NCBI GenBank assembly: GCA_965644295.1 | Contig: CBFFRP010000044.1 | Location: 6,120-70,119, forward strand | Direction of reading: 5' to 3' | Length of the DNA stretch: 64,000 nt | Source of the DNA: Paraphysomonas bandaiensis | Taxonomy: Eukaryota; Protista; Chrysophyceae | Shown: in pieces, positions 7,519 to 55,318 of the stretch | Layout: every line of letters begins with the position of its first letter | Numbering within the stretch: the first letter of the stretch is position 1 | Translations under genes and position numbers: made by a program | Notes under the pieces: model-generated | Told to the model about the DNA's origin: nothing | Database searches by the model: none | What the model saw: the letters and a program-made list of their open reading frames with translations, nothing else

Positions 7519-7653
7519 ATCTTATTTTTCGGAAGTAAATTGAAGCATATATCCTCTATATTATTGTAGTACAATATACAGCTAAAATACAGATAATTAT
7601 TGTCTCAATATTAGAGGAATCTTTCATCAAAAATATACAAAGGATGCCGATAC
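7519..7653 (-). mobile_element. ~150-bp TIR repeat (MITE-like, family A), copy 1, 3'-truncated
   Basis: Reverse complement matches the copy at 7675-7825; ends at AAGAT. Confidence 0.85.
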
Positions 7654-7674
7654 AATGTCAGTTCACAATATACA

Positions 7675-7825
7675 CGTATCGGCATCCTTTGTATATTTTT
7701 GTTCCAAGATGCCTCTAATATTGAGATAACAATTGTCTGTATTTGTGCCGTAGTTGTATTGCAGTAATATAGAGAATATATGCTTCAATTTATTTCCGAA
7801 AAATAAGATGCTGACTGCCGATACG
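7675..7825 (+). mobile_element. Family A MITE-like element, copy 2 (complete)
   Basis: TIRs cgtatcggca...tgccgatacg; internal ttgttccaagatgcctctaatattgaga...ttgcagtaatataga...cttcaatttatttccgaaaaataagatgctgac. Confidence 0.85.
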
Positions 7826-8303
7826 CAACGAAGACGAAGAGATACATACTACGAACGACTGTACATATACAGCAGACAGCAGGATATAATACGAGGGACA
7901 TGGACAACAGATGCGTGCATTGTGTGCAATAGCTCTACCTCAATACCGACAGACACCATCGCACAGTCATGTGCCATTATTGTCTTCAGATTAACAGCTA
8001 ACAGAGAGAATACACACACTCTATATACATACATGAACAAGATATATACCTCTAAGAGAAGAACGATGACTAAGAACTTGATATGTCAACACTGTAGAGA
8101 GTGTGTAGTATCTCTGAATATGTATAACTCGCCCAATCTACATATAACCACACAATACTGAATACTGTATATAGTCAGCACCGTAATGATCCCTCAAATG
8201 TTGAATTAGTATGAACGACAATTATTGAAATGATCCTGTGATCGACTATTTAGACGAACATCTTAATATGAAATCTACTGTACTTCCCAGAATTCTGTGT
8301 TGC

Positions 8304-8917
8304 AGTGGCATAGCAAAGGTACATTGCTATGTTACCTGTTGATATGTATGGTTGGTGTTGTAATGCTGTGGCTCATTGCATGAAGGACTGCTGCAAGAAT
8401 TGCTATCCAGAGAAGAGTAAGTAATAACCGGGATGGCTCACACAAATGATAGGAGGCAGTATATGTCATATATACTATTCGATGAGGTTAAATTGTAGCT
8501 TATCCTCTAGTGGCATAGCAAAGGTACATTGCTATGTTACCTGTTGATATGTATGATTGGTGTTGTAATGCTGTGGCTCATTGCATGAAGGACTGCTGCA
8601 AGAATTGCTATCCAGAGAAGAGTAAGTAATAACCGGGATGGCTCACACAAATGATAGGAGGCAGTATATGTCATATATACTATTCGATGAGGTTAAATTG
8701 TAGCTTATCCTCTAGTGGCATAGCAAAGGTACATTGCTATGTTACCTGTTGATATGTATGATTGGTGTTGTAATGCTGTGGCTCATTGCATGAAGGACTG
8801 CTGCAAGAATTGCTATCCAGAGAAGAGTAAGTAATAACCGGGATGGCTCACACAAGTGATAGGAGGCAGTATATGTCATATATACTATTCGATGAGGTTA
8901 AATTGTAGCTTATCCTC
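8304..8917 (+). repeat. Three near-identical tandem copies of a 205-bp unit
   Basis: agtggcatagcaaagg... starts at 8304, 8509 and 8714; only about 2 substitutions seen between copies. Confidence 0.95.
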
Positions 8918-9842
8918 ATGATGTTAAACATAGCTACTAACAGCTATATTTAACATTAGGTTGTATAGCTTTTAGTAGCTTGCTTGCTATAATAAGAAAT
9001 ACGTGTGTCCTGATTAGCATTAAGAAAACAAAAATGGGAATACATATTGTTTCAAATGAACGGTATGTATACTGGCTGTGTATGCTTTGGGAGTATTGCA
9101 ATTGCACTATAGATCAACTCAAACAATAAACCCCCAAATTTCTATATAAAATAGTAGCCAACAACAAATGTACTCTTACCACAGAACACAGAAGGATACT
9201 GAGGGAATAGCAACTGTGAGGTTTTGAAATTCGTACATAAGTGTGATGATGAATGTGAACAGTTGTAGTCGCACGAAAGGCTTCTTATTACCTTAATTAG
9301 CATCATCATCACATTTATATACAATGTGCTTACCCTCCTCTGCTAGTGCACCTGATCGAATGATGTGAGTATGAGTATGATATAAGGTAAACTATATCCT
9401 CATAAGCACAAAGTAGCTCAAACCCTAAAAGAACTGGATGCCACTGCCCTTAACCACCTAATATACAGCATCAGATATCAGATATGGCACTTAAACTCTC
9501 CAGAAATATTCTTGAAGTTGTTACGAAGTCCTGGATATGAAGATAGATCGCTTGCACGGACATCATTTATGATCTTGTACAGCAGTCGAAGGGTGAATTA
9601 CTATAACTTGGATTGTTTGATGACCTGCTCTTGATAGTTTGTTCATGATTGTGGTCTCTCTACAATAGTGTTTTATAATGAAATCACGTACATATGACTA
9701 TCAACATCATAATAAAGATAGAAGTGAGCTTCATTTGAACCGAATATTGAAGTGGAATGTCTATATTTTCCAGATGCTAATATGAGCGCCCTGTTGAGAC
9801 AAAATCAGGTCAAAAGAAAGCTTTTTTTGAGACAAAATGGGA
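8897..9842 (+). repeat. ~1-kb dispersed repeat (family B), homologous in inverted orientation to 49120-50070
   Basis: Shared colinear blocks, e.g. ctgagggaatagcaactg, gaaattcgtacataagtgtga, gcacgaaaggcttcttatt, gcacttaaactctcc, gatagaagtgagctt. Confidence 0.85.
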
Positions 9843-10016
9843 ACAAGATACTTATTGTTATTAGTCTAGGTAAGCGCATAATCAAATTCCAATGTTACAG
9901 TAACACACCACCATAGATATATCACCCATACACTCCTCTTAACGGATGTAAACTATCATAAAAATATCATAAAATATCGGGGCCTATTATAATTCAATAG
10001 ACCATCTGAAATGTCT

Positions 10017-10427
10017 TTAAACTCTAGACCATTTACCAGTCGTGGTTTCCTCGCTAAACTCACACTTTTCGATAATAGTTTCAACGGCTGCAACCCCCAA
10101 AGCCGCTATTGCGTTCGCTGTAAAGTATGCCGCAAATTTTGCTTTGAAAGTTGACCAAGCCACAGCCGGACTATCAAACCACATCTCGATTGTACATGCA
10201 CTACTGGCGAATAGAACGGCATTTCGGACGTAGTTTTTCACCATTTCTTTCGAAAGGTGTGCAATATCTGGATATCTGAATAGTATTCGCATATACTTGG
10301 ATCGTGTGTATGCTACTGGTAGATGAGCTTTAATCTTTTTCCCGAATACACTCCCCACTGTCGTCAGCTCCATACATATCTTACTATCTGGCTCTCTATG
10401 AAGAGCTGCAATCTGAACAGTGATCAT
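10017..10427 (-). CDS. Hypothetical 136-aa intronless protein with an Ala-rich amphipathic C-terminal half
   Basis: Clean ORF with protein-like composition inside otherwise stop-rich DNA. Confidence 0.5.
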   Translation of the reverse strand: MITVQIAALHREPDSKICMELTTVGSVFGKKIKAHLPVAYTRSKYMRILFRYPDIAHLSKEMVKNYVRNAVLFASSACTIEMWFDSPAVAWSTFKAKFAAYFTANAIAALGVAAVETIIEKCEFSEETTTGKWSRV

Positions 10428-15899: not shown

Positions 15900-16215
15900 C
15901 AAATGTAAACACTTTTCCCGTGCTTCCGTTGCTTTGAACTCTTTATGCTTTAGATGAAACTTCTGGAGTGTCTTCGGAGAGCGCTTCACCGCCTCCCTGC
16001 AGTACGAATACGCGATGGCATATGACATTGGCCTTCAAGTAATCTTTCGTCGCTTGCTTGTATGACTTCGCCTCAAGCTTGTTCAGCGGTGGAAGTCCGA
16101 AGTCTTCCTCTCTTTGTGGCCTTTCGAGCGCGACCTCGCTTTCCTCTTTACGCATCAGAAACGTCTCGAAATCTTCAATCCATTGATCAACATTGTTCTC
16201 GTCGAACCATGACAA
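15900..16215 (-). mobile_element. Ty1/copia gag N-terminal remnant, frameshifted
   Basis: FDENNVDQWIEDFETFLMRK resembles copia gag N-termini. Removing a 7-bp duplication (atgtcat/atgccat) restores KANAIAYSYCREAV. Confidence 0.6.
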
Positions 16216-16245
16216 ATCAGCTCTATCCTCCTTCTCTCCTCCGCA

Positions 16246-16587
16246 TCTGCTATCATATATATATAGTAAAGTCTAATTATTACATGAGAACGGTTGTGTA
16301 CAGAAACTAGTTATACATCTATAGACTAACTAATAACTGGACTTGCTATATACTACTAGCGGCGGGCAACCGTCTCGGGACTGCTTGTGCATCGCTGCGA
16401 GCACCATGGTGCAACCGTCCCTTGTATTGAGCTTAGTCGGGGGGTCTACTTTTGGGCAATATGTCTGGCGGACCTGTGCCATGGATTATGTGAGGGGTGA
16501 ATGGGGCGAGATGTATATGAGAGATGAGAGTGTAAGTTGGTGGTGGGTATCGGTCTGCTATCATATTGACTATCGGTCATTTTAGCA
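16246..16587 (-). mobile_element. Probable 5' LTR plus degenerate PBS of the copia remnant
   Basis: On the minus strand: TG start near 16587, TATA-like gtatatagca, then tgatagcaga (resembles a TGGTAGCAGA Met PBS) just before gag. Confidence 0.4.
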
Positions 16588-18174
16588 GTTAAAATCATTA
16601 AGAAAATTTTATAGTAATTAAACTGGATAGACTCTTTATTATAATTGCATACACAATTATTATAATCATGTAAAACATGTCAACAACATGATAATTTATT
16701 TCGTTCATATCAACCACTGCTCAACTTCAGTATCTTGAATCGTCATGATACAATACTTCAGTTTCACAGTTATAGCTATATAGTATATAGCATCTTTGTC
16801 TACGTATTACTGTTTTTCACATTGTATTAACGTATTCTACATTCTACAGTACTATCTTAGAGAACCATACGTATTCCAACATTATATACGTCTAACATGC
16901 CACTGTTTGGGTCCTATTATTTGTCGGTTATTATCGAATTAGTATCAGGCTATGCATACCGTTACGCTTTATACGTGAAAATTCTAAATGGATATATGGG
17001 CATTATTATAAACAGAGTAAAATACAGAATAGGCTTCTATATTAAGCGATGGAATATAAGGAACATATACAATAGAGTGTGAAGCTAAGTATACTTGATG
17101 TTGATATCAACACAAGTAGACACGCAACATCAAAGGCAACGTAGAGCACATGGACTAATATATCTCATGCATAAGTTATCATGCATGAATGTGGCTATAT
17201 ATCAACATATCAACTGGTTGTATTTCTCTGTCTTTTATAGAACTAATGTGTGATATTAATAAGGTAGCAACGGCTCCATAGGCCCATATGCAACACTTTA
17301 TATAATATACGGTATGTGTGTGTTATATATACTATTCGCCCCATGCAACTTTATATCTGCGCCTCTTCAGTTATAGTTTCATATCATCTATTCAACTAAC
17401 AACATATAAATATCCAAAGATAGAGATATATATGGTACACACGGGTATATGGTAGGATATGAGATATGAGTGATTGCACACACTGCTATATGGAGTATGC
17501 ACAATATACACACCATATATATGTAGATAGAAACATCTATATAACATGCTCACGTATCATTGCAAACAATATCTTAAATAACATCCATACCTCTCAAAAT
17601 ACATGCAATACATATTATACAACACCAATAAAACATATACTGTAGTATTCATTGCATAATATATATATAACTCGACCTTAAAGTTCTATAGTATCACTGT
17701 AGTGGTCATGCATGTAACTGTAAGTCAATGGCTGCCATATGTTTGAAGCAATGGTTTGTCTTCGTGTTGATGACTATTGGCTGCAACTACGATTCATATA
17801 GTTCGAAAGCATGATAGAAACAGACAATGTAAATCATTAGTATGCATTAGATGAGATGGAAGCCACTTTACTTAAATGAATGCATGCATGCATGTTTTCT
17901 ATGCAACGATCTGTTCCATATATATCATAAAGTGGGTGTTTTCACTACAAAACCCCCCAAAAACGCTTTTTGCTACAATACTTGTGCTTCTTTAAATAGG
18001 AATTTCGTAGAATATACCTTATTAATTCCTGTTTTCCATGCTTTTCGCATTATAACCTTCGAATACTACTACAAAACCCATGAAATTGATGAAAATCAAG
18101 GATATTGTACTCTATATTTACAATATTTACAGTATATATACTCGACTTGGAGGTCGCAGTGTTGTGGTTAATAT

Positions 18175-18308
18175 GTATCGGCATCCTTTGTATATTTTTG
18201 TTCCAAGATGCCTCTAATATTGAGACAATAATTCTCTGTATTCCAGCCGTAGTTATATTGCAGTAATATAGAACATTTTTGTTTCAATTAATTTCCGAAA
18301 AATAAGAT
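18175..18308 (+). mobile_element. Family A MITE-like element, copy 3 (3'-truncated at AAGAT)
   Basis: gtatcggcatcctttgtatatttttgttccaagatgcc...ttccgaaaaataagat. Confidence 0.85.
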
Positions 18309-18385
18309 ACATATGTAGAGGAATTAGATCACATCATACTCATAATTTGAGATAGTAGTAAGAATATTATAAGAAATTAATTACA

Positions 18386-19546: not shown

Positions 19547-21911
19547 TTAATTATGGGATGGTGCGTCCTTTGCATCCTCGGTATCCATAGGAACTGGAGT
19601 AAGATTATGAAACATAGTAAAATCAACAACAGTCCACCCTGCTTTCAAATAAGTAACAAATGAAAAATCGCATCGACTCACCGTTGCTGTCAATTGATGT
19701 ACACGGCACAAAAAAGTGATCCCACACTATTTCATCGTATCTATAGGAGTGGAAAGCTTGTACATTATGCGAAGTTTGCGGATCCATGCCCTCAACAACC
19801 ACTACGATCTCCATTCGCCTATCCTGCATAAACGCTTTTACATCCTGCTGCTCCCACTTGTACTGTTCTCTTTGTTGTTCAGGGTCTACACAAGGTTTTA
19901 ACGTATCTTCTGAGCCGTCGGGATGAAGCGCCCCCCTGCCTGATTGCCGTGTAATAACTTCGGGAAAAGAATATTGGCTTCGTCTACGAGAAATCGATTG
20001 CGATGGAGCTGACTCAGAAAATTGTTTATTATCTGCCTGAGAGTGCAGGGCAGAAGGAATTTCCCACATTTTCTCTGCAGGGGTCGAACTGAGATAAGAG
20101 TCTCGGTCACCCCCACTACATGTATCCTTGTGTGTATCAATATCAGGGGGGCTATACGGCCTCGGGGTGTAGAGGGGTACCGTAGGAGGTTCCTTCCAGC
20201 ATTTAGGAGGTAATCTGAGTCATTACACCGCAATATCACATATAACTTGACTATATCAATTAGAATAACTTACAGCGGAGAAAAGTCATCTATGTCGTGT
20301 ACAATCACCTGCGGAAGCGACAGTAGAATTCTAGATCCCAGGTCATCATTGGGGTGTGAGAGACGCATGTTGTATGTCTGACAAGTGACAGCTCCCGCAG
20401 ATCCCATCCGCTCGTACCGGACTGCATAGACGCGCACTTTCGCCTCCACCAGTTGCATCTTGCGTAGCTCACATACTTGAAACATGAAATACAACTTGCC
20501 ACGGATACGGCGGATTATGGCGCGGTTACTCATGACAATCGTCTTCCGACGAGAACGGGTCCTACGATGTATTCACAGAACACATATGTTAGAATTATTC
20601 AACTACTACACATACACTACCTACTGATCCTCTGGTAAAGGACACCCAACACACCCGCTTGAAGCATGAGACTCATACAAGAGTGAATAGTCAATACAAT
20701 TGATGGGGTCACGCATCCTCCAAAATATATATCCCTGAGAAGCAAGTCAACAGCGTGAACTACATCGATCAGCTACAAGCGCACACAAGTCCATGTATCC
20801 CCGACAGAATAGTCGCACTCACTTGGCACCGAACCCGATAGTCATCATAATCTCAAGTGAAAAAGTGTACGCTCGAAGAAATGAAGTTGTCGTAATGTTA
20901 CAACGGTCGGTGAAGTTAGCAAAATCTCCCATGATTGCCCATGGTATAGCCATTACAACCGTACTGTGGTACACAGTATTAATACTATTCACATAAAATA
21001 TGTGTCACAATCGCGACTCTGCTTACCAGGTAAGAAATATTACCATCAAAACCAAACAGCACCTTGGTGTTTTCATATACACCAGTGCCAACACAGGATC
21101 TCCTCCAAAAAACAGGCCCAAAACTTGATCACCAGGAACCTTTCGCTTAATATACCAGTCACCTTCACTCTGATGGAACGAACTATCGCGATCAACTAAA
21201 CGAGTGGCTACATTCTTAGGTGTAGATTGTATAGCAGAATCTGATGTCCAGCTATCAGATATCCAACTCTCTCTATATACATATATACACAATTATTTAT
21301 AGTATATGTAATATGTAATGTATGATATGTGATGTACAGTATGTGATGTACAGAGTATTATATGTGCAATATACAGTATGTGTGTATGGCTACATGTACT
21401 ATGCAGTGTGTGTGTATATGGCTACATGTACAATGCAGTGTGTGTATATATGGCTACATGTACAATGGAGTGTGTGTGTATATGGCTACATGTACTATGC
21501 AGTATGTGTGTATATGGCTACATGTACAATGTGTGTGTGTATATGGCTACATGTACAATGCAGTGTGTGTGTGTATATGGCTACATGTACAATGCAGTGT
21601 GTGTGTATATGGCTACATGTACAATGCAGTGTGTGTGTATATGGCTACATGTACAATGCAGTGTGTGTGTATATGGCTACATGTACAATGCAGTGTGTGT
21701 GTATATGGCTACATGTACAATGCAGTGTGTGTGTATATGGCTACATGTACAATGGAGTGTGTGTGTATATGGCTACATGTACAATGCAGTGTGTGTGTAT
21801 ATGGCTACATGTACAATGCAGTGTGTGTGTATATGGTTACCGTGTGCCATCTCTTTTCTTCATAACAGACACCATTTTACTTTCAAAGTAAGTCATAAAA
21901 CAAGTGCCCAT
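19547..21911 (-). CDS. Inward-rectifier K+ channel (Kir/IRK family), multi-exon
   Basis: Pore motif FSLEIMMTIGFG; IVMSNRAII...YFMFQVCELRK; EIVVVVEGMDPQTSHNVQAFHSY..DEIVWDHFF; terminal VDFTMFH. Confidence 0.88.
21378..21840. repeat. 32-bp minisatellite (gtgtgtgtgtatatggctacatgtacaatgca), about 14 copies, in Kir intron 1
   Basis: Head-to-tail repeats with no spacers. Confidence 0.95.
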
Positions 21912-22047: not shown

Positions 22048-22204
22048 ATCGTATCGGCATCATTTGTGTATTTTTGTTCCAAGATGCCTCATATATGGAG
22101 ACAATAATTGTCTGTAATCCAGTCGTAGTTGTATTGCAGTTATATATAGTATTTTTGCTTCAATTTATTCCCGAAAACTAAGATGCTGACTGCCGATACG
22201 ATAC
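22048..22204 (+). mobile_element. Family A MITE-like element, copy 4 (complete)
   Basis: atcgtatcggca...tgccgatacgat TIRs. Confidence 0.85.
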
Positions 22205-22659
22205 ATATATACAGACGTCTAACACACAGATGTCATATAATGTCACCACTAATACACATGATAGCCAATCAATGAATAGTCACAGGTACTGGTTGGAAAA
22301 TAATGGTTTGAAAAAAAAAAAGTTTGAAGTAGAAGAAGTGAAAAGAAAAAATTCTATGAAAATCCCTTATTTTTTTAAAATTTAAAATTACGAGTAGTGT
22401 TAAAATCTGTATGTATGATTAAAGTACACCACAATATCCCCATAATATACTGTGTATATATAAAAACAGGTATAGTAAATCCATGCATTAAACATCATCA
22501 TATCACACATACAGTGTACATTTAAACAAAGCAATACAATCTGCTACATTACAGTCTATAGAATCAACTCACACAATGGTATCAACTCATTGCAAAAGAT
22601 GTACAACAAAACATGATCGGTAATTATCTATACTATCAAACTATTGTTTTAATTGATTT

Positions 22660-23621
22660 GAATAGATGTCGTTTAATGCACTTATATAGTCATCTATCAG
22701 CAAAGACTTTATGGAAACGTGCAATTGACTCAATGTATTTGAATACAAAAGAAAGGTCAAGTATTACAACTGCTTTGAACCCATGGATACAGTTGGCAGA
22801 AATGTTTAATGATACTAGTTTAGTATTTCAGAATCAGTGTATTACTTACTACGAGGATGGAACACCGATAATTCCATACAAGTAAGTAAACTATACCACT
22901 TATCAACACTTCGTCTAATTTTTTTACAGGCCTGTGCCTAAATTGGAGAGCATAACTAAAGTTTGTTATGATCTCAACCCATCCTTGAGTGGGAGGCCTC
23001 AACGCGATGGGGAGTGGATCAAGAAAGAAATATGTTAAATTCGAAGCACGTTGACAAAGGCAAGTACTACATATGTAACGAACCCGCCGCATTTTATTTC
23101 TGTGATTTCTTACATAGGTATTTAACGATTTCAACCGTAGTGGTAATCAAGATGCCGAAAACTTGAACAATGAATGGTGCAAATTCAGCTCTACATATCC
23201 TACTATTTACACGTACGCTTTCTGTATCATTGATCGAGGCATGCTTGATCAATTAGGAATAATGCTTCCCGTGGAAATGCAAAAAGATAGTGGTGTCTTG
23301 GTGTCGGAACGAACCAAGCGTCCTCTCTCAAATAATCCGTCGGTAGTAAACCGTAGGCGTCAGAGAATGCGCAGAGCAGAATGTCCTCGTAGTACGGATT
23401 CCACAACGATCTCCGACCAAGGAGGATCAAACTCCATTACGAACTCGTTTGTAAAAAATATGCTTGACACTTTTCAGCGACAACACGAACGAAAACTTCT
23501 TGAATGCTTATATCTCTATGGTACGGACAAAATGAAAGCGAAGGCCCAAGAAAGACTATTACAGCTGGGTTACGTGAAAGGCGTTGAACTGAATTTTGAT
23601 TTTGAACACGAACGCCTCTAA
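22660..23621 (+). pseudogene. Multi-exon gene with one in-frame TAA; Myb/SANT-like (possibly transposon-associated) protein
   Basis: NPWIQLAEMFND...DLNPS...RDGEWIKKEIC*IRSTLTK|VFNDFNRSGNQDAEN..EWCKF. One GT-AG intron and one GC-AG intron. Confidence 0.5.
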
Positions 23622-27434: not shown

Positions 27435-30069
27435 ATGACAAGAGATGAACTAGATGTAAAAGAAGGTTATATATATCGTAATGAAGAAAATAAGCGAAAT
27501 TCTATACATGATACATCTTCAACAATCACATCTTTACATCCAAATCGTCATATAAAAAAAAAGAAAAGTATTAATAAATATGAATCCCCATATGTACGTG
27601 AAGCACGATTAAAAGCAGAAGAACGTGCAAGACGAGCATATAAGAAATCAAAAGAAATAAAACCATGGAATAATGATTTTACAAAAGAAATACCCCAATA
27701 TTTTGATAATAAAATACATAAATCTGAAATATTTAAATTACAACCAAGAGATCCATCAAAACCTTCAAGTAAAGAGAATTTATGGTCAAATTTAAGAGAA
27801 TATCATCCAACTTCACATCCAACAACTTCGACTTCATCTATGAAACGATCATCAAAGTTAACTATGCGAACTAATGAGGTATGACTATGTATGTATGTAT
27901 GTATATGTATGTATGATTATATATGTGTATGTGTACATGTATGTATGTATGTATGTATGTATGTATGATTATATATGTGTATATGTATATGTGTGTATGT
28001 GTACATGTATGTATATATATATAACTATATGTGTATTATCTATTAGACGTCTCCGGTTAATTCTCCGCATAAGAAGTATGGATTTATCCCCAGAGACCAC
28101 GTATCATCACAGGTGCCACAGTGATACATACATACATAGATAGATAACTACCCATATATATATATGCATGTATGTATATACACATACTGTGCTCGTTGTT
28201 CGTGTGTCTTGTGTTATCTTACATGAGATCAGGTTGATATGAGCTCACCGGTATCTGATACACATGATAAGCAGCCACTAGACTCTGATCATCATGACAC
28301 ACCACATTCAAGACAAGATATACATCACTCTAATAGGGATCCTCACTACTCACAGCCCACTTATTCATCTGCACATCATAATCCAGGCACTTCCTCCCCT
28401 CATCGCATGTCTATATCATCATCCACCCAAACACTTGATAGTACCACGCCCTGGATGCCTTCATATCACGATACACGACGTGGTGAACCTGAGAGACAGT
28501 CATCTTCACCACATAGGGGCACACGCGAGAGAATAAACGCCACAATGTCGCCACAGCGGCGCAGAAATTCATCCCCTCACACTTCCGACAGAAGGGTATT
28601 AGCATCTCCGCGAACTCACCGGACTAGTTTTGAAAGGGAGAGTGTACCGATAGCACCCAAGCGAGTAACTACTCGTGCTACATCTCCTTTTGACCCTAAC
28701 GTAGTGGATCGACTACTTTCCACAAAGTCAGTAGGGGACAACATCCCCCCATCAAACCCTACACAATTCCCCTTAAGTCACAGCCGAGGACCGGAAGGAA
28801 CATTGGAGGCAACCTTGGTAAGGATTTTGGAACACCAAGCACGGGCTCAGGAGGTGCGATATGTATGTCTTTCATCAACGTGTATGCTAAACTAGGGCCC
28901 AGGTCAGCAGCACAGCTAACTCAACTGCTTTGGGAAACGTCAGTAAGCTAGTTACAGAAATGGGAAAGTTAATTATATCTGCTGGCGATAAGAAAAAACA
29001 TCGCCGGCGTTCCAAAAGTCAGACCTTTGCCTCGTCGAGCAGAAGTGCAACCGCGTCTCCGACGCTTCGAAGTCAGCATGAAATGCTCGTGTACACCCCC
29101 CACAGAGATGTATATGACAGCACCCAGCAGACACAAACTCATGGACCAAGTGATTCCACCGGGCTCATAGAGGAGGCAGATGCATCGCGCACAATACATG
29201 TGAATAAACGCGAGGAAAGTATATGCAAGCAGAATAAATGGACAGGACCTGTAAAAGCCAATAGCTGCAACAAGAGGAAGACGAAAGCAGATATGTTGGA
29301 CCACGTACTCAGCAAAATCCAAGCGATGGAGCACCAAGAACAGGAGACCTCTCGACTGCTTGTAAATAGAAAGAACCGAGACCGCCACGCGGATATCCCC
29401 GTATCAACCTCCAGTTCAAAAGAAGTTAAAATAAACCATAAGGGCTCCCCTCTGCGTCGTGTGGTAACAAAACCACCAGTAAATGAGGTAGGCTCCCAGC
29501 GCCATGTTGTTTGAATCTTCTTTCTAATATGTTGCTCAAAGTCACTCCAGGATGCTATTTTCATGCAAAAAACTGAATTCGACTACCTGGACCGTATTGA
29601 ATCCGCAATATCGCATACGCAAGACACAACTGATGTGCTGAATCTACCTGAAGAGAAAGGTGGACTAGCGGTATATAAATCACCAGTGGATGGTGAAAAT
29701 AGAATTTCTGAGCCATCTAATGAGCTTCAGAGGGCAATGAAATATGTCGCTGCAGATTCTGTGATGCGACATGATGTGAAAGAGTACCAGCTCGAGTTTA
29801 AAAGGTTAATCAGGCAATTTGCAGTCGTTTCTATCATAATTTTGGTGCGTAACAGGTGGAAGAAACTTAGAGAATGTGTATTTCGAGAGAACAAAACTAG
29901 TTTACATGATGTTGTTGTCAGGTGACATACTTTTCGAATTTGCTTTTTTAAATTGATTGTTTTTGATAGACTTTCGGACGCTTTGCTGAATGACCTGCTC
30001 GACGGTGCGACAGATGAACTTGAAACATTATTTGCTGAAATAGCGGATAAGTTTATAGATAAGATTTGA
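27435..30069 (+). CDS. Hypothetical multi-exon Ser/Arg/His-rich low-complexity protein with an acidic helical C-terminus
   Basis: Chain of ORFs (27312-27884, 28239-28895, 28930-29514, 29563-29925) linked by GT-AG introns; last exon ends ...IADKFIDKI*. Confidence 0.7.
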
Positions 30070-37092: not shown

Positions 37093-37224
37093 GTATGTAG
37101 ATATGTGATTATGATGATGTGATATATATATATGTATGTATGTGTGTGTGTTGAGACTATGAATATATATGTAGAGATCTTCTTATGATTATATTGAGAG
37201 ATATGAAGATGAAGTAGATATGGA

Positions 37225-37400
37225 TGTATGTATGTGTGTATGTATGTATGTATGTATGTATGTATGTATGTATGTATGTATGTATGTATGTATGTATGTA
37301 TGTATGTATGTATGTATGTATGTATGTATGTATGTATGTATGTATGTATGTATGTATGTATGTATGTATGTGTGTATGTATGTATGTATGTATGTATGTA
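37225..37400. repeat. (TATG)n microsatellite
   Basis: Directly visible. Confidence 0.97.
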
Positions 37401-37873
37401 TTGACATTTACTTGCTTTGGTGAAGAAATATCCTTGAAGTGAATTTTATAGGAAATATATTTATACGGGTTGTTTCAACCGGAATGTGTAGCCGGTATAT
37501 TAGGTATTCTGCTGTTCAAGACTCTTTGGCACATACCGTTCACCCGTTCACGATAATGTGAGAGCACTCTGTATATACAGCAGAGTATGGTTAGATTGGA
37601 CAGAGGTATATGGTATACCAGTATACCATGGTATACAGCAGGTATATAGAGCTGTGTTTATATACGCATACTCTGTAAGTCTCTATATGTAGGTACGTAT
37701 ATGCTATAGTGTAGTAGTAGAGACTATAGACTAGAGAGCATATAGAACACAGTCCACAGATCTACTTACATCTTCATCCCTCCCTCATCATTCATTCTTA
37801 CAAATCCATCCATGAACTCTATATAAACAATACCCTCTTCTCTTCTCTCCTCTCATCTCTTCACATATTAACA

Positions 37874-39902: not shown

Positions 39903-41874
39903 ATTCATTTACTGTAGTTAATGTACCTTTGAAAACATCGATGAAGTCTTACTCTCTGGGGGTCTATCAGCATCACTTATTTAACTATGAATTATAAGGC
40001 ACAAGTATGACAACAACACGCTACAACCTCTTACACACCACTCTACACACTGAAAACAATTGGTTTGGAAACCAAATCGCACCTTGAAAGGATTTGCAGT
40101 TTGCTTGATGCATCAAAGCTGAAACATTCTGACTGTACAAGATACTTGCTCCGAAATATTAGTGGCTTGGAGGAAGGAAAGCATATAAACAAGCATTCCA
40201 CAAGTAATCTGATGTAATATAAAAGACACTTTATGCAATTTAGCATATCTATCTAATTAGTTATGGATTCTTGGAGTCAGTCCTCCGAAGAAGATGCTCC
40301 TGACTGCCGATACGGTTGTTGACAGACGGACACATCGACAGATCTTTCAAGTTCTTTGGAAAAGCGGCCGTATTTGTTATTTTTAGAAGAAAATACTGGC
40401 GATTTTGAGGAGTTGACGAATATCCCTATTTTTACGCTGCCAAAAAAGGGGGGTTTGAGTGGAACGAAATTGATGCTTCGGGGACAGCGCCGTCCCTCAA
40501 TTCTAGAATTAATACTGCCACCCCGTCCCTGAGGGACGGGCAACACGACGACCTCAGTTTTTAGGTCCGTAAAACCCCTATTTTTATATGTGAGATGATG
40601 TGTACATGATTTGAGTGTGTTTGTACTGCTGTACATAAGAGTATGTGTACTGCTGCATGTAATATAGCAGTACTCAGCAGAGGCCACTCATATGCTGTAG
40701 TATGATGTACGTATATATAGTCGTGTTGTGGTTTGCGTTGCTTCGGTTAGCATCCACTGATCGAAATGAGGAATCAAGCTTCAAACAGATTGCAGTTGTT
40801 CTCATCTTTGAGATGAATGTTTGGAATATAATGGAGGGTATAGTAGACCACACCTTCCTCACAGTCCCTCATACTGCATCAGATATAAGATACTTGGAGC
40901 TCTTATGAAGCCGGACTTATTCACTCGACCCATGTATACATCCCATTTGAGATGAGAATTGCATGTCTATGTACATAGTAGTGTATAATAAGCTATGTGT
41001 TTATACGCAGACGAGCTGTTAGCACACTGTCATGTCCCAGTGAAGTTTGTCATTATGTGTGAAGTCAAAACGCCCTCGAGCAAATCGTAAAGGGGCATTC
41101 CTGGTACAGTCCTCTAAGAAACGGTGTGGGTTGCGAGGGTACTGTGTGTACCCCGCTCGTACACTTCTCCGGTTTTAAGCACTTTCACATAGTGCTTGCA
41201 GGCTATGTGCATAATGCACTCCCGCACCACACCGTTTCTTAGAGGACTGTACCAGGAATGCCCCTTCACGATTTGCTCAAGGGTGTTTTTCAGAGATGGA
41301 CAATTTCGTTCCACTCAAACCCTCTTATTTTCTTTGGTGGAGTAAAAATAGGGATATTCGTCAACTCCTCAAAATCACCACCGTCAACGAAATCGCCAGT
41401 ATCTTCGTCTGAAGATAACAAATACGGCCGCTTTTCCAAAGAACTTGAAAGATCTGTCGATGTGTCCGTCTGTCAACAACCGTATCAGCAGTCAGCATCT
41501 TCTTCTGAGGACTGACTCCAAGAATCCATAACTAATTAGATAGATATACTAAATTGCATAAAGTGTCTTTTATATTACATCAGATTACTTGTGGAATGCT
41601 TGTTTATATGCTTTCCTTCCTCCAAGCCACTAATATTTCGGAGCAAGTATCTTGTACAGTCAGAATGTTTCAGCTTTGATGCATCAAGCAAACTGCAAAT
41701 CCTTTCAAGGTGCGATTTGGTTTCCAAACCAGTTGTTTTCAGTGTGTAGAGTGGTGTGTAAGAGGTTGTAGCGTGTTGTTGTCATACTTGTGCCTTATAA
41801 TTCATAGTTAAATAAGTGATGCTGATAGACCCCCAGAGAGTAAGACTTCATCGATGTTTTCAAAGGTAAATGAA
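39903..41874. repeat. Large inverted repeat: ~570-bp arms (39903-40472 and 41301-41874) around an ~830-bp spacer
   Basis: Arms are near-identical reverse complements with a few indels. Confidence 0.93.
41067..41289. repeat. Nested 63-bp inverted repeat enclosing three short hairpins
   Basis: 41067-41129 versus 41227-41289, 3 mismatches. Confidence 0.93.
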
Positions 41875-41892
41875 GGACGTGCATGAAGATTG

Positions 41893-42157: not shown

Positions 42158-42563
42158 ATCTCCACTGAATTAATGATAATTTAACTGCAGAGATGCCATG
42201 ATGTGAGACCATCCTTCTAGTCCAGCATCATATAATGAATAAAACTTTTTTTTAAATGGTAGAAACTCCGTGTAACTCAAACTAGCCACCTAGGTCGCTT
42301 GTGGCTTGATAATTGTGATTATTAGAATATGGATCTTATTCTAGTATATTCAGTATGTCACTTGAAGACAATGTAAGAGAATACAGTGAAATATAGTGAT
42401 GTACAAATGCTGTGATGATATTGAGAAACTGAAATAGTTTGATCTTTCAAGATATGTTCAGTAACGAGAGGTTCGCATATGTAGGATATTATGCAGGGAT
42501 TATAATGAGTTAGTGTTGGTTATCACAACTTTGTGTAAACGATATTAATAAATCTATCTAGTC

Positions 42564-43165
42564 TTACGACAAATTCTCTCTGTGATCTAGCTTAAAATGA
42601 GCAATTATCAATAGTGATTTGGGTGTCTCAGAGGTTGTTGATCGCTTTCTGTTGTTGCTGGATGGGATATCGAACCAAGGTCCTCCCATCAATGTAGTTC
42701 GCAATGTGAGAAAGTTAGGTGCTCCCAGTGGTTTCGTAAGGAGGTCGGCTAACAGTGACTTGGTGGGCATATGATCAACAGTCAATAGATTCTCGGCAAT
42801 ATGTTCTCGAATGAAGTGATATCGGATCGCGATATGTTTTGTACGTCGATGATGAGTAGGATTGTAACATAATTGGACTGCACCTTTATTATCGCACCAA
42901 ATAGTTGTTGAGAATGGGAGTTTGAAGCCAATTTCTGATAATAAAGAGCGTAGCCATAAAGCTTCCTGAGCTGCTGATGATAAAGCCATATACTCAGCTT
43001 CGGTAGATGACAATGCCACTGTTGTCTGTAATCGAGATTGCCATGATATAAGACAATTACCTATGAAGAATGTAAAAGCTGTAGTGGACCGTCGAGTGAG
43101 GTGACATCGTGCCCAATCGCTATCGCAGTATCCTGATAATGTTATGTGGGATCCATATGGTATAC
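42564..43165 (-). mobile_element. Ty1/copia pol RNase H domain remnant (5'-truncated)
   Basis: GYCDSDWA..RRSTT, ISWQSRLQTTVALSSTEAEYMA, WCDNKGA, HRRTKHIAIRYHFIRE, LADLLTKPL. Confidence 0.95.
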
Positions 43166-43574
43166 GTATATGCATATGTGTACATGTTCGTGATTAATGC
43201 TCTATCGTATGCACTCCTATATACTACGAATAGAACGTTCTTTATTGACTCATGCTCTTGCTGCAGCGTTGGCTGTCTACACCACTCTCAACGTAATCTC
43301 TGTTAATTGCGATTGACATTGCACTATATTCATTCGTACATTTTTATTAAATATGAGATATGTAGACATAAAATACTTAGCTGTAGGATAATCATCGTTA
43401 CCCTTTGAAAAATAACACATACACGAATATTAAGAATACTTCAAAATATGACTACAACATGACTTGAAGCTAAGCAATATTTCCAAAAGCCATAATTGGC
43501 CAGTGCTATTGTTTGATGAAAGCACAAAGGATGTCACACGAAATATTCTGCACAACCTTTAGCATATCTTGCAA

Positions 43575-44949: not shown

Positions 44950-45020
44950 TACGGCAGCGGGGAATCGAACCCCGGGCAGAAGAATGGGAACCTTCTATGT
45001 TACCACTACACCACTGCCGT
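44950..45020 (-). tRNA. tRNA-Gly (anticodon CCC)
   Basis: Minus strand acggcagtggtgtagtggtaacatagaaggttCCCattcttctgcccggggttcgattccccgctgccgt-a folds into a cloverleaf with A and B boxes. Confidence 0.9.
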
Positions 45021-47672: not shown

Positions 47673-48060
47673 TAGTAACAGTTCAAAATATAATGAACTG
47701 TTATAAAATATTCAATTGATATGAATATATCATATATATATAGTGAATGAAGGCATAGATGTATATGTATATATATATGGTATGTTAACACTCAATGAAC
47801 TCAAGTCACTCTATACTGCTGCTGTCTATATATATATATGTGTGTACTGTACTGTATGTGTCGTTTCATATGTATGTATGGTATGTGTGTACCTGTAGGG
47901 AGAGTTTATGGAGTGTTTCAAAAAAAAATCAAAGAATATAGATTTCTAGGTGTCAAAAAAGTAGACATTTTCCAGTATTACTCACAAAATCTATAGATTC
48001 TATATACTGTGTGTGTATGTACACAGTATCTTATCATAAATATCTATGTGTACATACAGC

Positions 48061-48210
48061 ATGTCGGCAGTCAGCATCTTATGTTTCGGGAATAAATTGA
48101 AGCAAAATTCCTCAATATTACTGCAATACAAATACGGCTGGAATACAGATAATTGTTGTCTCAATATTAGAGGCATCTTTGAACAAAAATACAAAAAGGA
48201 TGTCGATACG
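48061..48210 (-). mobile_element. Family A MITE-like element, copy 5
   Basis: gtcggcagtcagcatcttatg...ggatgtcgatacg is the reverse complement of the family consensus. Confidence 0.85.
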
Positions 48211-49119
48211 TCTGTATATACACCGCTGCTAGATATCCATGTATGTATCATCTCTACAACTATCTGTATAGTCCATATCTTAATATACCATATATAACAA
48301 GAGTAGAAGACAGAATCACAAGAAACATTAACCCATACATCTATCATATCATCCCTTATATAGATATATACATACAGGTATGTATAGACTGCTCTGTATA
48401 TGTATGTACTAGACATGTACATCCACCTCATATACTCGACTATCTATTACATACATAGCCTTATATACTGCTACTCCTACTACCTGATATACATTGATAT
48501 ACAAGCAGCATGTATGTTGCCGTGCAGTCCCTATAGAGCCATAAAGCCATAGACCATCGAGCTATATGCAACACGGACTACTATATGGTTATATGGGTGT
48601 ATGGTTTGTGTAGAATATAGTTATAACATAATGTATTATAATAATCTAACCCTACTATTAAACTACTACATCTTCTTCTATACTGATTTGAGAGGGCATA
48701 ATATATCCAGAAAGTGTGATACTATTCATACTTCACCTTAATAACTACTGCAAGTAGCACGGAACAACATTATTCTTTTTTTGCCTGTACCAATTACTAC
48801 GAAACAACTATCTTCTTTTTATGTTACAAATACTATGTTCTCACTGTTGCTCTTCGTATTTTGATGTATTACCAGTTCACTATATATGTCCCTGTTAAGG
48901 ATGCCCTATATGAGATATTATGGGTATGATATACTATTATAAGTACATGCATGTGCTTACTTTCCAGTCCTGATGCTATGTAATTGGCGTAATTCTATGT
49001 CCAATCTGCAGCAAGTGAAAGTAAACTTTAAAGTGAAACTGTCAACTCATAGATCAAAGCCATTCTACGTGAGAAGAAGCAGTGGTTGACCTTTTGATAA
49101 TCAAATTAAATAAATGCAT

Positions 49120-50070
49120 CCCCATTTTTTGTCTCAAAAAAATCTTTATATTGCCTTGAATTGGGCTCAACAGATCGCTCATATTAGCACCGGGCAAATA
49201 TAGACACTCAACTTCAAAATTCGGTACAACAGAAGCTCACTTCTATCTTACTTATGCAGCATACAGACAGAAGAATATCAACAGTGCAGACCATAGATAC
49301 GAAGTAGTGATTATCTATAGGATCCATCAACTGCTGTGTGACTGTCATATGTATGTGATTTCATTATATTACTCAATTAGAGAGAAACCACAGTCATGAG
49401 TTAACTATACAAAGCTGGTCATAAAACATTCCAAGTTATATTCTATCCTTTGTCTCCTGTAGAAGATCACAATGATGTCAGTGCAAGCGATGTACCTTCA
49501 TAGCCAATACTTTGAAACAACTTCAAGAACATTACAGGAGAGTTTAAGTGCCATATCTGATGCTGTATAGGTGGTTAAGGGTAGTGGAATTCAGTTATTT
49601 TAGGGTTTGGGTCATATTGTGCTTATCAGGATATTATGTGCCTTATATCATACACTGAGGTGCACTAGCAGGAGTTAAGCGTATTGTATATAAATGTTAT
49701 GAAGATGCTAATTAAGGCAATAAGAAGCCTTTCGTGCGATTACAAATGTTCACATTCAACTTCACACTTATGTACGAATTTCAACACCTCGCAGTTGCTA
49801 TTCCCTCAGTATTCTTCTGTAGTAAGAGTACATTTGTTGTATATATTATAAATAGAAATTAGGGGGGTTATTGTTTGAGTTGACATACAGTGCAATTGCT
49901 ATTTCTTAAGCATACACAGTAACATACCATTGATTTGAAACAATATGACTTCTCATTTGCTTTCTAAATGTTACTCAGGAAACGTTAATTTCTTCTTACA
50001 GCAAACAAGAATACTAATAGCTATACAATCTAATATTACGTTTTCAACATCAGGATAAGCTACAATTAAC
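49120..50070 (-). repeat. ~1-kb dispersed repeat (family B), second copy
   Basis: Reverse-complement colinear with 8897-9842. Confidence 0.85.
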
Positions 50071-50617: not shown

Positions 50618-53600
50618 TCAATTTTTCCCATTGGCGCTCAGATTCGGTATTATAATATTTGGAAATTTTTTCGTCACAACAAGAAACTCTTTCAGCGTGA
50701 TTGCATTGCTGTCATTCGCCACAGCCTGCTTCATCATAGTTTGGGCTTTTCTTTCAATACTAGCTAAACTGACCATATGATTTCCTCGAAGAATCTGTCG
50801 AACTTCATTTAAAGATATATAGCCCGTCTTATCTTCATCGAACATATGAAAAGTTAAGGGCAATCGAACATCTCTCGAAAGTTCAACAAAATTGAAGCAC
50901 CCGAGCAAAAATTCCCTGAAATCCACTTTTCCAGAACGTTCGGGATCAAAGAGCCCAAACAGTCTGTTATTCTCGTTAATAGGATCAATGCGAAGAAGAT
51001 TGCAAAACTGATTGAACGTAACGTTTCCATTCGCCCGCTGTTCTCTAGGTAAATCCAAGTATGAGTTGTACCCCATTTTTAAAGAGTCAAAATCATATTC
51101 GTGGTCATGCAGGAAGTTCGTAATCATTTTCTTCTTCATATCGCGTGCCTGCATTTCCTTCTGTCTCTGGTACGTTGCAGAGTCTACTTCATTCGCTCGA
51201 CCAGCCATTACTAATTTTTCATCTTCAATTTCCTTCAGTTTGGCCTCATTAGCTTCACCATCCTTGTCCATAATCGCGGGGTTGGGATGCAAAACGAGTT
51301 TTCTAAATTCATCAAAACTAACTTGGCCATCTCCATCAATATCGACCATCGCAATCATCATATCGATTTCTTCGTCAGTAATAAGCTCACCCATGCATAT
51401 AAGAATGTGGCGAATCTCCGATGCACCGATAAAATTATTTTTATCTAAATCAATAAATCTAAACGCATTTTCGATCTCTTCGTCTGTGAACTCTTGCTTC
51501 ATCATGTCAGATTTTTGCCCTTCTTTTAAAATATCTGCCACCATAGCATTGTCATCTTCTCTAACTTGCAAGTCATCCTTTTCGTCTGGAGGTGCTTGTC
51601 TGAGAGCATCATCAAAACTCTCCATACCCGGGCGGTACTGAGGAAAGGCTATAGCTGGAGGGCCTTCAAAGTGAAATTGCAAGTTAATATCCCCACATTC
51701 ACGGACTCCGCCTGTGGGTTTGTTTTGTTTCAGTGTCACCCAGAGATTCTGTATTCCTGCCTTGAATACTGTTAAAAGTGAGACTTGAGCGCTCCCTATC
51801 AACTCATCATCTCCTTGTATGTTCTGGTGGTAGCAGTCCACATCCATGAGGTACTGGTCCACAATATCGAAATCAAGCTTCGCAGACCAGACAGGATCCA
51901 TCCCGCCGTCCTTGTCGACAGGGCACTTTTTCGACATTTTAGCTGCCTGACTATTGAGTGTAAAGTTTACAAACGGGTCCAGACGAAGTGTTTCGCCTTC
52001 AGTTGGAGCATTCTTACCAACAGGTAGGAGTCCTTTGCCTCGAACTACATTCATATGCAATGTTCCAGCAGGGAGGTGTGTTACCTGTCAAAATCACACG
52101 TTATCCATATACTCACATTTGTGAAAGAGGTACCTTCATAACTAGCTGACCCTGTGCCGTCTCATCATCGCGAAGCTTATCAGGCTTATAAAATAAGTCA
52201 AAGGTGTCCCTCTTTGCAGCCATCGGTAATATATCCATGTAAGGCAATAGGCATAGATCGGTGTAAGCAATGGGATTGTCTTCCCCAATTTCATGGTCAC
52301 AAATCAATATATCTAAATCATTCACCCATGATTCAGTATCAACCCACATAATAATATCCTCCTCTGCAAAATACGGATCTCTACCGCCCTTCTCGATCAC
52401 CTTACTCTTCTTTTTGTATGATCCCAATGCCATCTGTACGTATGGATGCTGTTGACCCATGGGGTCTACATTTCTAAGTCTCTTTGCCTCGTACAGAGTA
52501 AACACAAACATTCCGGCCCTCGCCTCTTCAAATAAGAATTCTAACATAATCTAAAACCGCAAATTAAAGGCATCAACATGGAGCATTTAATAATGAAAAC
52601 ATGGATACGTACTTTGCTTGTACTCGTTCTGTCACCAGGGGCTACAATAGGAATCTTTTCGTTGTATGCCTTGAATGGATTTTTGAAAAATCGAACCACA
52701 CTCATTGTCACTGTTCCGATTACTTCATCCTTAAATGATCCTTTATTCCACACTTCTATGCTCAATTGAAGATCCTCCTGAAATATGTACTGTGAGGGCC
52801 GAACAACATCGAAATAAACCAATTCATCGGCAAAGCTCGCATCTGTGTCTTGTTTCCGTTGTACTTGTGTTTCTTTCCACGGCCACTTATCGGCAGCCCC
52901 CAGTTTGAATCTAATATATGGATCTACCCGTGGGTTTTTCGATTTATCATCCCTCTTCCTCAGGCCAATGCCTTGAATACAAGTAATATTGAGTCTTCCT
53001 CCATTTATTTCTCTCGCAAGAGTACTCTCAAGCCCCTCTTTATTAAGGGGAACAGGTGGTACGAATTCTCCAACGCCCTGTGCCTGAGCGACTGCGGCAT
53101 TAGGGTCTTTGATTACTTCGACACCAGGGGGTGCAGTGATCAGCTGGCTAACAACAGATCCGCTGATGTCAGACTGCATGTCATCTGGGATGGTGCGTTG
53201 GCCAGCAGAGCTAACAGTAGGAGGTCGTTTGCTTGGCTCACTAGTAGTGGAGCTCGAAGTGGGGCGAGACGGGAGAGGTTGTGGCTTGTCCGCAGAAGGC
53301 TGGGTTTGCATCGGCTGTGGCTTGTCCGCAGAAGGCTGGGTTTGCATCGGCTGTGGCTTGTCCGCAGAAGGCTGGGTTTGTATCGGCTGTGGCTTGGCCG
53401 CAGGAGACTGGGTTTGCATCGACTGTGGCTTGGCCGCAGGAGGCTGGGACAGCATCTGTGTCTGAGGGTCAGAATCAACCGGTGCAGAGTGCGGCTCGAT
53501 ATCTTGCGCTGAAGGAGCCGGAGTCTTCACGTCTTGCTGAACAACAGGAACGACTGATGGCGGCCCCTCAGGAGGCTGCCCTGCCAGTGCAGAAGGCTGG

Positions 53601-54734
53601 GCCGTAGGCTGCTTCTGTAGTTGTGGGGACATGGGTTTCGAAGTGCTAACAGAAGGTTCAATTGGGACCGCCGGTGTTGAAGTTGTAGGAGCCGTCGTCG
53701 CAGCAGGCATAGCCGGAGAAGAGTCATGCGTAGTAAGGGGGACAGCTGGCGCTGCATCTTTAGCTGTTTCCATTGGTTCGGATGGTACAACAGAAGTGTC
53801 CACGGGTACTGCAGGTGCTGCCTTGGCATCCTCTTCGTCTGAAGAGCTTTCTTCGAATTCTGGGAACTCTTTGTCTCTTCTTTTTACCACCACGACCTCC
53901 TCCACCTTGGGGGCTTTGTAACCCCGCTTGAAAGGAGGTTCTGTCGTTGGAGGGGTGTGCTTCGGCTTCTTCGGATCCACTTCTTCCTCCAAAGGAGGGG
54001 GGGCACGGCCTTTGCCTGGAGGTGGTCGAGTGGGTCTCGGCGGCACGCGTGTGCTCGGAGGCAAAGTCTGCGGTGGTAGTGGCTTGCCCTCTGGAATTCC
54101 ACCTGGTGGCCCAGATGGAGGAGGTGGACGGCCAGCCTTGGGATCTTTTTTCTCAGCTGGTGGAGGTGGAGCGGACTTCTTCTCGTTCGGGTCCGCTTCG
54201 AACATTGAGATGGCGCCTTCTTTCTTGGTAGGCTTGAGAGTAAACTTTGGAGGAGCTGCACCTTTGCGACCAGCTTCGATGATACCTGTTTTCGTATCAG
54301 GTTCGAACTCTGCTGGCTGATAGCTAGGAGTAAAGCCTCTTCCTGGAGGTGGGCCTCGACCAGGAGGTCCAGAAGCCTGCACTTTGTCTTCTGGAGACGC
54401 AGCAGGAGCAAAAGATAATCCTTTTGATGGACTAATTGCTTTAATATTTTCAACTGCAGGTCTATGCGCAGTGTTGGCTAAGTCACGTGGAGGAGGTGCC
54501 ATTGGAGGTGGCTTGAGCTTCATGGCCCCTGCATTAGGTGGTGGTCGAGGAGGAGGTCCTGCAGGCTTCTTAATTTCACCAATACCCCTTACAGCTTGAG
54601 CCGCTATAGCATATAACATAAGTATATATATACATATATATTAGATTGATTTACTTACGGGGTGGTGCTCTTGGTTGTGGAGGACCACGTGGAGGTGGTC
54701 CTCTTGGCCTAGCAGGAGGTCTTGGGCCACTCAT
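50618..54734 (-). CDS. Proline-rich N-terminus, three C2 domains and multiple EF-hands (Ca2+/membrane-binding protein), 4 exons
   Basis: C2 motifs (DPYIRFKLG, HPYVQMALG, DPFVNFTL); EF-hands DLDKNNFIGASE, DIDGDGQVSFDE, DPERSGKVDFRE, DEDKTGYISLNE; 36-bp coding repeats (QPSADKPQPMQT) at ~53280-53450. Confidence 0.88.
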
Positions 54735-55168
54735 ATATTATAACTACTCTAATGACATGATATATACATATATATATATGATGATGAGGATCTATGTGTC
54801 TTAAGTGTGTATGTATGTGTATGTATGTATATATAGAGAGGAGAGCAGTTTTAAGTTACGTTATTATATCATCGCTATCCTGCTGCTGGTGATGGGGAAA
54901 ATTGTGTGACAAGAGTGACAAGGGTGTGTGTACTGCTGTACAGAGTACGTACAGTTGTACGTTATTATAGTGTAATGGTACTCTTGTACTGTACAGCAGT
55001 ACACTGTATTATATAGTACAAAGTACCATTATCCACTCATATACTGCTGTACTTGCAAGTGTGTACAATTGCCCACAGTGGTACAGTACATACCATTGTC
55101 CACAGCAGTACAGTACTATTGTCCACACATGTACAGCAGTACTTATAAGTGGACCATCATCCAGAGCA

Positions 55169-55318
55169 GTATCGTATCGGTAGTTCATTTTTCGGGAATA
55201 AATTGAAGCAAATGTAGTCTATATTACTGCAATACAACTACAGCTAGAATACATATAATTGTTGTTTCAATAATAGAGGTATCTTTGAACAAAAATACAC
55301 AAAGGATGTCCATACAAT
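55169..55318 (-). mobile_element. Family A MITE-like element, copy 6
   Basis: gtatcgtatcggtagt...ttttcgggaataaattgaagca...aaaggatgtccatacaat. Confidence 0.82.

Follow-up and report, generated by a model that had tools for sequence, protein, structure and literature searches.

The short repeated element found in six copies in the window (the whole 64-kb stretch of Paraphysomonas bandaiensis DNA that was analysed) is probably a non-autonomous cut-and-paste DNA transposon, a MITE, that targets promoters. Its ends and target-site duplication (TSD) have been demonstrated, as have a paralogous site that lacks the element and a pair of identical copies in unrelated places; its copies accumulate within ~700 bp upstream of gene starts. 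That it inserts a short way upstream of genes, in both orientations and also between intact back-to-back genes, points to a promoter-seeking transposon. This was one of the readings offered in the original prediction, and it is now supported by the TSDs, the start proximity outside the window, the matched nulls and an ORF-only check; the surprising part of that prediction, i.e. the marking of unpaired promoters and the directional core, is false.

Copies in the window and their neighbouring genes

The copies and the genes next to them are as follows:

7512..7654, minus strand: MITE copy, short-end variant of 143 bp; TSD AT; 277 bp 5' of the ADAT1 start
7235, minus strand: ADAT1 start (PF02137)
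7675..7825, plus strand: full MITE copy of 151 bp, inverted neighbour of the copy 7512..7654; TSD CA; 95% identity to the family majority sequence
18174..18315, plus strand: MITE copy, 142-bp variant lacking 9 bp next to its right end; TSD TA; 70 bp 5' of the PCD start
18386, plus strand: PCD start (PF01329)
22050..22200, plus strand: full MITE copy of 151 bp in a head-to-head gap; TSD AT; 139 bp 5' of the Kir start, in opposite orientation to Kir
21911, minus strand: Kir start (PF17655)
22577..23621, plus strand: Kir divergent partner gene, with an in-frame TAA near 23037
48060..48210, minus strand: full MITE copy of 151 bp whose ends have decayed, no TSD being discernible; ~390 bp 5' of a gene start at 47672 (minus strand)
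55173..55316, minus strand: MITE copy, 144-bp variant with 7 bp absent; TSD AT; ~440 bp 5' of the C2/EF-hand gene start
54734, minus strand: C2/EF-hand gene start (C2, PF00168)

The six copies at five loci reported originally are all recovered, with E-values of 1e-17 or better and with ends that are now exact. The start codon claimed near each of the five loci is likewise found, at ~70-440 bp, and the convergent gaps of the window are, as described, free of the MITE. The partner of Kir does carry the premature stop ascribed to it, the TAA lying in the spliced frame; this gene belongs to a small multi-copy family with six paralogues at 36-54% identity and gave no match in a Pfam search. Concerning orientation, the proximal copy is co-oriented with its gene at four of the five loci, as stated before (p 0.19). 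The proposed preference for unpaired over paired promoters was not confirmed, being weak in the window, Fisher's test giving p 0.27 with our gene models (4/7 vs 1/6) and p 0.12 for 4/7 vs 1/8; a value of 0.026 is reached only when Kir is reassigned post hoc to the unpaired class.

Ends, size and copy number of the family

The termini of the MITE are CGTATCGGCA...TGCCGATACG. A TIR had been recognised correctly, but the 14-mer given for it took in the duplicated AT and some flank; the true TIR is CGTATCGGCA, perfect over 10 bp (fold z -3.7) and extended to 12 bp in the 144-bp variant. The terminal bases are mostly CGT..ACG, several copies start with TGTATCGG, and a TG- start occurs in ~7/47. Most members measure 151 bp, the end variants being 142 and 144 bp long, and the element is short, with neither an ORF nor coding capacity.

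The 62.6-Mb genome of this marine protist is estimated to hold ~1,000 copies, dispersed and uniform in size. An internal 21-mer, present in nine of the 11 copies from an unbiased sample, has 820 matches—410 on each strand—against 0 for the control. The tree of the copies is star-like (terminal 4.1, internal 0.6), and those near promoters and far from them have diverged equally. No match was obtained in an Rfam search; the MITE was not found in JGI metagenomes, where the 12 matches to a 19-mer are due to chance, nor in viral contigs.

Target-site duplications and empty sites

Contrary to the earlier statement that no TSD is evident, a 2-bp TSD flanks five of the six copies in the window (AT, CA, TA, AT, AT) and 23 of the 32 full copies sampled, where 5.2 would be expected. 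Ten different dinucleotides are represented, AT being the commonest (11/23) and TA occurring only once. The duplication is sometimes 3 bp long, as proved by a paralogous empty site: for C297:380121 there are two empty paralogues, compared with which the filled site has gained the element plus TGT. An empty site was also sought at locus L005 in other runs, and none was found; X4, X8 and X9 carry the MITE copy in flanks near-identical to the present assembly, so the empty-site test there says little.

Position of the copies relative to gene starts

Outside the window, a start codon lies within 700 bp of the MITE at 25 of 34 loci (27% expected, p 2e-8), the starts being those of a self-trained gene finder, with Pfam checks for part of them and TSS evidence at one locus, and 29 of the loci having been picked for likeness to one copy. 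It should be noted that the predicted starts at L002, L011 and L019 run through a microsatellite; even 19/34 loci near a start, set against a null of 0.34, would yield p 0.007. The enrichment holds at p 1e-6 when TATG content is matched, likewise with non-repeat DNA only, and the check based on ORFs, independent of any gene finder, places 21 copies upstream and eight downstream (null 41%, p 6e-4). The nearest gene end is a 5' end in 22 cases and a 3' end in six. By comparison, segments of other repeats are near starts in 12/96 and near stops in 39/96 cases. The distances from MITE to start are scattered, reaching 680 bp, and all the positions represent old insertions already filtered by selection, with no de novo insertions among them.

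Alternative explanations

The same distribution might arise through retention, if insertion were random or guided by local AT- and TATG-rich sequence and the pattern were left by selection or sequence placement. The target flanks are indeed richer in TATG/TACA than intergenic DNA (0.125 vs 0.068, p 9e-6), the promoters of this genome are TATG-rich too, and AT is the commonest TSD. Matching for composition, however, lifts the expected share near starts only to 0.30-0.33, whereas 0.74 is observed. Moreover, other repeats are depleted near starts, which means that selection eliminates insertions in those places and cannot be the source of the MITE's enrichment. The youngest sampled pair also argues against retention: the copies at L004 and L005 are identical to each other in different flanks, the latter residing in a promoter and the former having no gene within 1.5 kb. 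Retention bias is considered unlikely.

A domesticated cis-element, acting as a unidirectional promoter core at promoters without an intact divergent partner, was suggested by the window, with four of five proximal copies co-oriented and four at unpaired promoters; the MITE also lies inside some RNA contigs, so that a few copies are within transcripts. Copies nevertheless stand at paired and unpaired promoters alike, nine of the 34 loci outside the window lying in head-to-head gaps, which make up 10% of intergenic bases (the null); among the sites near starts the share is 36% against 24% expected. A clear Pfam gene is present on either side of the gaps at L002 and L014, and one clear and one weak Pfam gene at L020. 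At L005 splicing and expression are seen for both head-to-head genes; the copy (1502-1652) occupies the untranscribed gap between RNA contigs reaching 1288 and 1712, i.e. 214 and 60 bp from it, although contigs cannot give the true start. The orientation to genes is random (nine co-oriented, 16 opposite outside the window), with neither a fixed orientation nor a fixed distance. Rare mutations show an even, Poisson-like distribution over the length of the element (mean 1.69, variance 2.08; 26 invariant sites vs 22.5 expected), which argues against domestication and gives no sign of internal purifying selection; the uneven conservation once taken for constraint was only apparent, arising from variants common to subfamilies and from misalignment of the short ends, and was dropped. 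In addition, ~1,000 copies could serve no more than a small minority of promoters. The domesticated reading is largely refuted by its own criterion and extremely improbable. Hardly more probable is a boundary or insulator screening the promoter from adjacent repeat-rich DNA. Other repeats do lie beyond the far side of the copy at many unpaired loci, but this order results simply because the MITE sits close to the promoter and the other repeats farther out; seven of the nine head-to-head gaps contain no other repeat detectable in the sample, and the absence of internal constraint speaks against this function, too.

Proposed mechanism and source of the transposase

For the promoter-targeting transposon, a transposase encoded elsewhere would bind the MITE ends and cut the element out, and reinsertion by a staggered cut of 2 bp, sometimes 3 bp, would leave the variable TSD. 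As in mPing, Mu and P, taken as analogues, the accumulation at promoters would most likely come from preferential insertion into open, TATG/AT-rich promoter chromatin, the small size making the element tolerable there.

Tc1/mariner (Stowaway) and PIF/Harbinger (Tourist) were rejected as sources, their fixed TA/TWA duplication being at odds with the ten dinucleotides seen. ISL2EU/Pangu (PHIS) elements make a fixed AT duplication and have purine (GG) termini; they were rejected as well, AT forming only 11 of the 23 TSDs and the MITE ends beginning with CG. The CMCT clade comprises EnSpm, Mirage, Chapaev, Transib and Plavaka, PlavakaA having a variable 2-bp TSD with ends TGT..ACA and PlavakaB a TSD of 2-3 bp (PMC12730594). 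The MITE shares the variable 2-3-bp TSD, and its CGT..ACG resembles the PlavakaA ends, one base away (PMC12730594); compared by described motif, its termini are neither TGT..ACA nor CATCA..TGATG (PlavakaB), nor the CA..TG of most of the clade. Judged from TSD length and end motif, a Plavaka-like transposase of this clade may tentatively be put forward, and three PF18759 hits to Plavaka transposase exist in the genome (C394:73232, C259:11306, C355:23914). A search of the genome by terminal pattern found no autonomous partner, all CGTATCGGCATC ends among the matches listed being MITE variants. A longer repeat carries the right-end motif internally; that at 41.1-42.2 kb was rejected as a parent, its likeness past the first 31 bp being at shuffle level, and its open frame matches ankyrin-like repeats only.

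Comparison with known systems

Both plants and animals are already well known to harbour promoter-seeking MITEs. The rice mPing is 430 bp long with 3-bp TAA/TTA duplications, and the TSDs of Mutator and P measure 8-9 bp. The present MITE, known from genomic copies, differs from mPing in its 151 bp, variable 2-bp TSD and CGT..ACG ends, and from Mutator and P in that its data concern fixed copies spread over ~700 bp and placed by predicted starts. mPing, a Tourist/PIF-Harbinger MITE, is over-represented <1 kb upstream of gene starts, avoids exons and prefers AT-rich targets; it thus resembles our element as a short, non-autonomous, many-copy TIR element with exon avoidance, 5' over-representation and AT-rich targets (PMC4065317). 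De novo insertions of Mutator (maize) and the P element (Drosophila) are most frequent no more than 50 bp from the TSS, with 5' ends enriched and 3' ends avoided as in the MITE, whereas Spm shows no promoter targeting (PMC7337890). Barley Mariner and Harbinger MITEs, equally small and non-autonomous, concentrate just upstream of the TSS, apart from other repeats, but use TA/TAA targets in a plant host and occur also downstream of genes (PMC5738225).

No description of promoter targeting in the Plavaka/CMCT group was found in the literature examined. That a transposase of this group mobilises the MITE and actively targets Pol II promoters like Mu and P, a minority of the copies being perhaps co-opted into 5' UTRs or start sites, is rather doubtful; if true, it would extend 5'-specific targeting to a clade, and to a protist lineage, where no described example was found. 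The transposase, once found, could become a promoter-tagging tool in this group of protists, and ~1,000 promoter-proximal insertions offer a ready supply of regulatory variation. The repeats of this compact protist genome are sharply partitioned, the MITE occupying 5' gaps (74%) and other repeats the 3' and distal regions (12% near starts).

Copies and structure of the element

BLAST and nhmmer searches, with the 22-kb copy as a query, revealed exactly six copies of the miniature TIR element (MITE) in the window, i.e. all of those originally predicted, with the following exact ends:

7512-7654, minus strand, MITE copy
7675-7825, plus strand, MITE copy
18174-18315, plus strand, MITE copy
22050-22200, plus strand, MITE copy
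48060-48210, minus strand, MITE copy
55173-55316, minus strand, MITE copy

The majority sequence, 151 bp long, contains no ORF and gave no match in an Rfam search; its TIR is CGTATCGGCA, the left end continuing with TCCTTTG and the right one with GTCAGCATC, and the forms of 144 and 142 bp are shorter by 7 or 9 bp close to that end. The target-site duplication (TSD), reported as not evident in the original prediction, was overlooked because the flanking AT had been counted into the TIR. With the corrected boundary, a 2-bp duplication is present in 23/32 full copies versus 5.2 on permutation of the flanks (0/1000 permutations), with ten different dinucleotides represented and AT accounting for 11 cases; five of the six window copies have one too. 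Two copies exhibit a 3-bp TSD, one of them—at position 380121 of contig C297 of the same assembly—being inserted within another repeat, two empty members of which show the gain to equal the element plus TGT.

The cores diverge from the majority sequence mostly by 4-13% and the tree of the copies is star-like. Two copies, those at loci L004 and L005, have the same sequence although their sites are unrelated, which indicates recent movement; the latter copy is present in the three DNA runs compared, all near-identical to the assembly. Once common subfamily variants were set aside, mutations were found to be Poisson-like along the length (mean 1.69, variance 2.08; invariant sites 26 vs 22.5), and thus there is no sign of constraint inside the element.

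The host assembly is eukaryotic (62.6 Mb, 669 contigs), and since part of its sequence is present in marine metatranscriptomes, the host is a marine protist. An internal 21-mer of the MITE has 820 genome matches, 410 per strand (control 0), and was found in 9/11 copies taken from unselected DNA, from which about 1,000 copies are estimated. Searches of JGI metagenomes and of viral contigs yielded no copies.

Position with respect to genes

The sample consisted of the window, 29 loci (the best matches with 1.5 kb on either side) and a 200-kb part of C297 picked independently of MITE content, with gene starts taken from a small HMM gene finder trained on that sample, a Pfam check of 30 flanking exons, and clustered copies counted once. 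In many window genes the AT content is far higher in the 5' part than in the 3' part, and true starts are therefore missed by a single coding model.

The predicted association with promoters was borne out: outside the window, a start codon lies within 700 bp in 25/34 MITE loci versus 27% of random intergenic positions (p 2e-8), and in four of the five loci of C297 alone. The nearest gene end outside the window is a start in 22 cases and a stop in six (null 44%, p 2e-4), or 21 versus 8 if only long ORFs are considered (null 41%, p 6e-4). With a few of the predicted starts running through a microsatellite, 19/34 versus 0.34 still gives p 0.007. A null matched for TATG content or purine-pyrimidine alternation reaches only 0.30-0.33 (p about 1e-6), and other interspersed repeats behave in the opposite way (12/96 segments near starts, 39 near stops); the 5' bias is therefore real and specific to this family.

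The claim that the element marks promoters lacking an intact divergent partner did not hold, since 9/34 loci fall in head-to-head gaps, which make up 10% of intergenic bases. Paired promoters account for 36% of the sites close to a start versus 24% expected, and are thus not depleted. These gaps include:

L002, RhoGEF / glycoside hydrolase 65, Pfam on both sides
L014, LUC7 / GNAT, Pfam on both sides
L020, sulfotransferase (weak, E 0.002) / choline kinase, Pfam on both sides
L009, L010, L017 and L024, Pfam on one side, predicted gene on the other

At L005, both divergent genes are covered by spliced RNA contigs extending to 1288 and 1712, the MITE copy (1502-1652) falling in the gap between them. 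One locus, L015, occupies a convergent gap. Nor is co-orientation with the gene general: 9 copies are co-oriented with the nearest start and 16 are opposite to it (13 and 17, the window included).

Inside the window, the paired/unpaired contrast with the present gene models is not significant (p 0.27), reaching p 0.026 only if Kir is reclassified for its broken partner. The premature stop in that partner is real, and the gene belongs to a small dispersed family:

22577-23621, divergent partner of Kir, in-frame TAA near 23037; six paralogues, 36-54% identity

It has no Pfam match and could, to judge from its appearance, be a decayed accessory gene (Myb/SANT-like) of a transposon.

Origin of the bias and relatedness to known transposons

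The element is thus mobile, has TIRs and 2-3-bp TSDs, and, in either orientation, is over-represented upstream of starts but not downstream of stops. Its transposase probably prefers open promoter chromatin or is tethered near initiation sites, with AT/TATG-rich DNA mildly favoured, and the element is probably small enough to persist where bigger repeats are purged. Two copies within 800 bp, found at 8/39 loci, fit hot spots or local hopping. Retention bias alone is a less likely cause of the position near starts: other repeats are scarce at 5' ends, and it is improbable that about 1,000 insertions, unconstrained and in random orientation, were positively selected. The proposed role as a boundary against repeat-rich DNA is likewise disfavoured, since 7/9 MITE-bearing head-to-head gaps hold no other repeat detectable from the sample.

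In its behaviour, the element resembles mPing, with its preference for promoters and avoidance of exons (PMC4065317), and the Mariner and Harbinger MITEs of barley (PMC5738225); its 5'-not-3' bias is shared with Mu and P (PMC7337890). The family is new, the type of transposon already known. Stowaway, Tourist and ISL2EU were rejected since the TSD is not fixed; the CMCT clade is compatible with variable TSDs of 2-3 bp. PlavakaA has 2-bp TSDs with TGT..ACA ends and PlavakaB 2-3-bp TSDs with CATCA..TGATG ends (PMC12730594), whereas the MITE ends, CGT..ACG, match neither motif. The host genome has three Plavaka transposase hits. The element is classed simply as a MITE, without a superfamily, a Plavaka-like nature being a possible, if somewhat doubtful, assignment. 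In a terminal-pattern search of the genome, no long element with both MITE ends was among the matches listed.

Other features of the window and of other contigs

One MITE copy lies 513 bp upstream of one gene of a tandem pair (L031-L050):

C297:211116-214740 and C297:217673-221013, 3.5-kb multi-exon gene in two tandem copies

The target flanks of the element are enriched in TATG words. The remaining features of the window are as follows:

37200-37410, 60650-61190 and 27880-28030, long (TATG)n arrays, of which two occupy head-to-head gaps
39918-41874, inverted duplication of a multi-copy repeat, arms 555 and 574 bp, 93% alike
15943-16482, minus strand, ORF upstream of PCD, matching a repeat in C297 (68-81%)
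8951-9850 and 49118-50038, another interspersed repeat, two copies 79% alike
8304-8918, near-perfect tandem array, 3 x 205 bp
42172-43175, Copia-like reverse transcriptase/RNase H remnant
21295-21880, 32-bp tandem array filling the first intron of Kir
44950-45020, minus strand, tRNA-Gly(CCC) gene

Inside the inverted duplication, the MITE right-end motif occurs at 40314 and at 41481. Elsewhere, two copies of this repeat start 12 bp before that motif, and a copy in another contig, C213, has about 2 kb of different DNA exactly at that start point. The ORF upstream of PCD is probably a transposon remnant; it has no Pfam match. Each copy of the 79%-alike repeat is located 1-2 kb distal to a MITE copy. 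The 42320-42613 part of the Copia-like remnant has dozens of genome copies, 97-99% identical, as a young LTR-like piece. Among the matches listed, an identical 34-mer starting CGTATCGGCAAATT occurs at least 15 times in many contigs of the assembly and never in an inverted pair; it is probably the interior of another young repeat.
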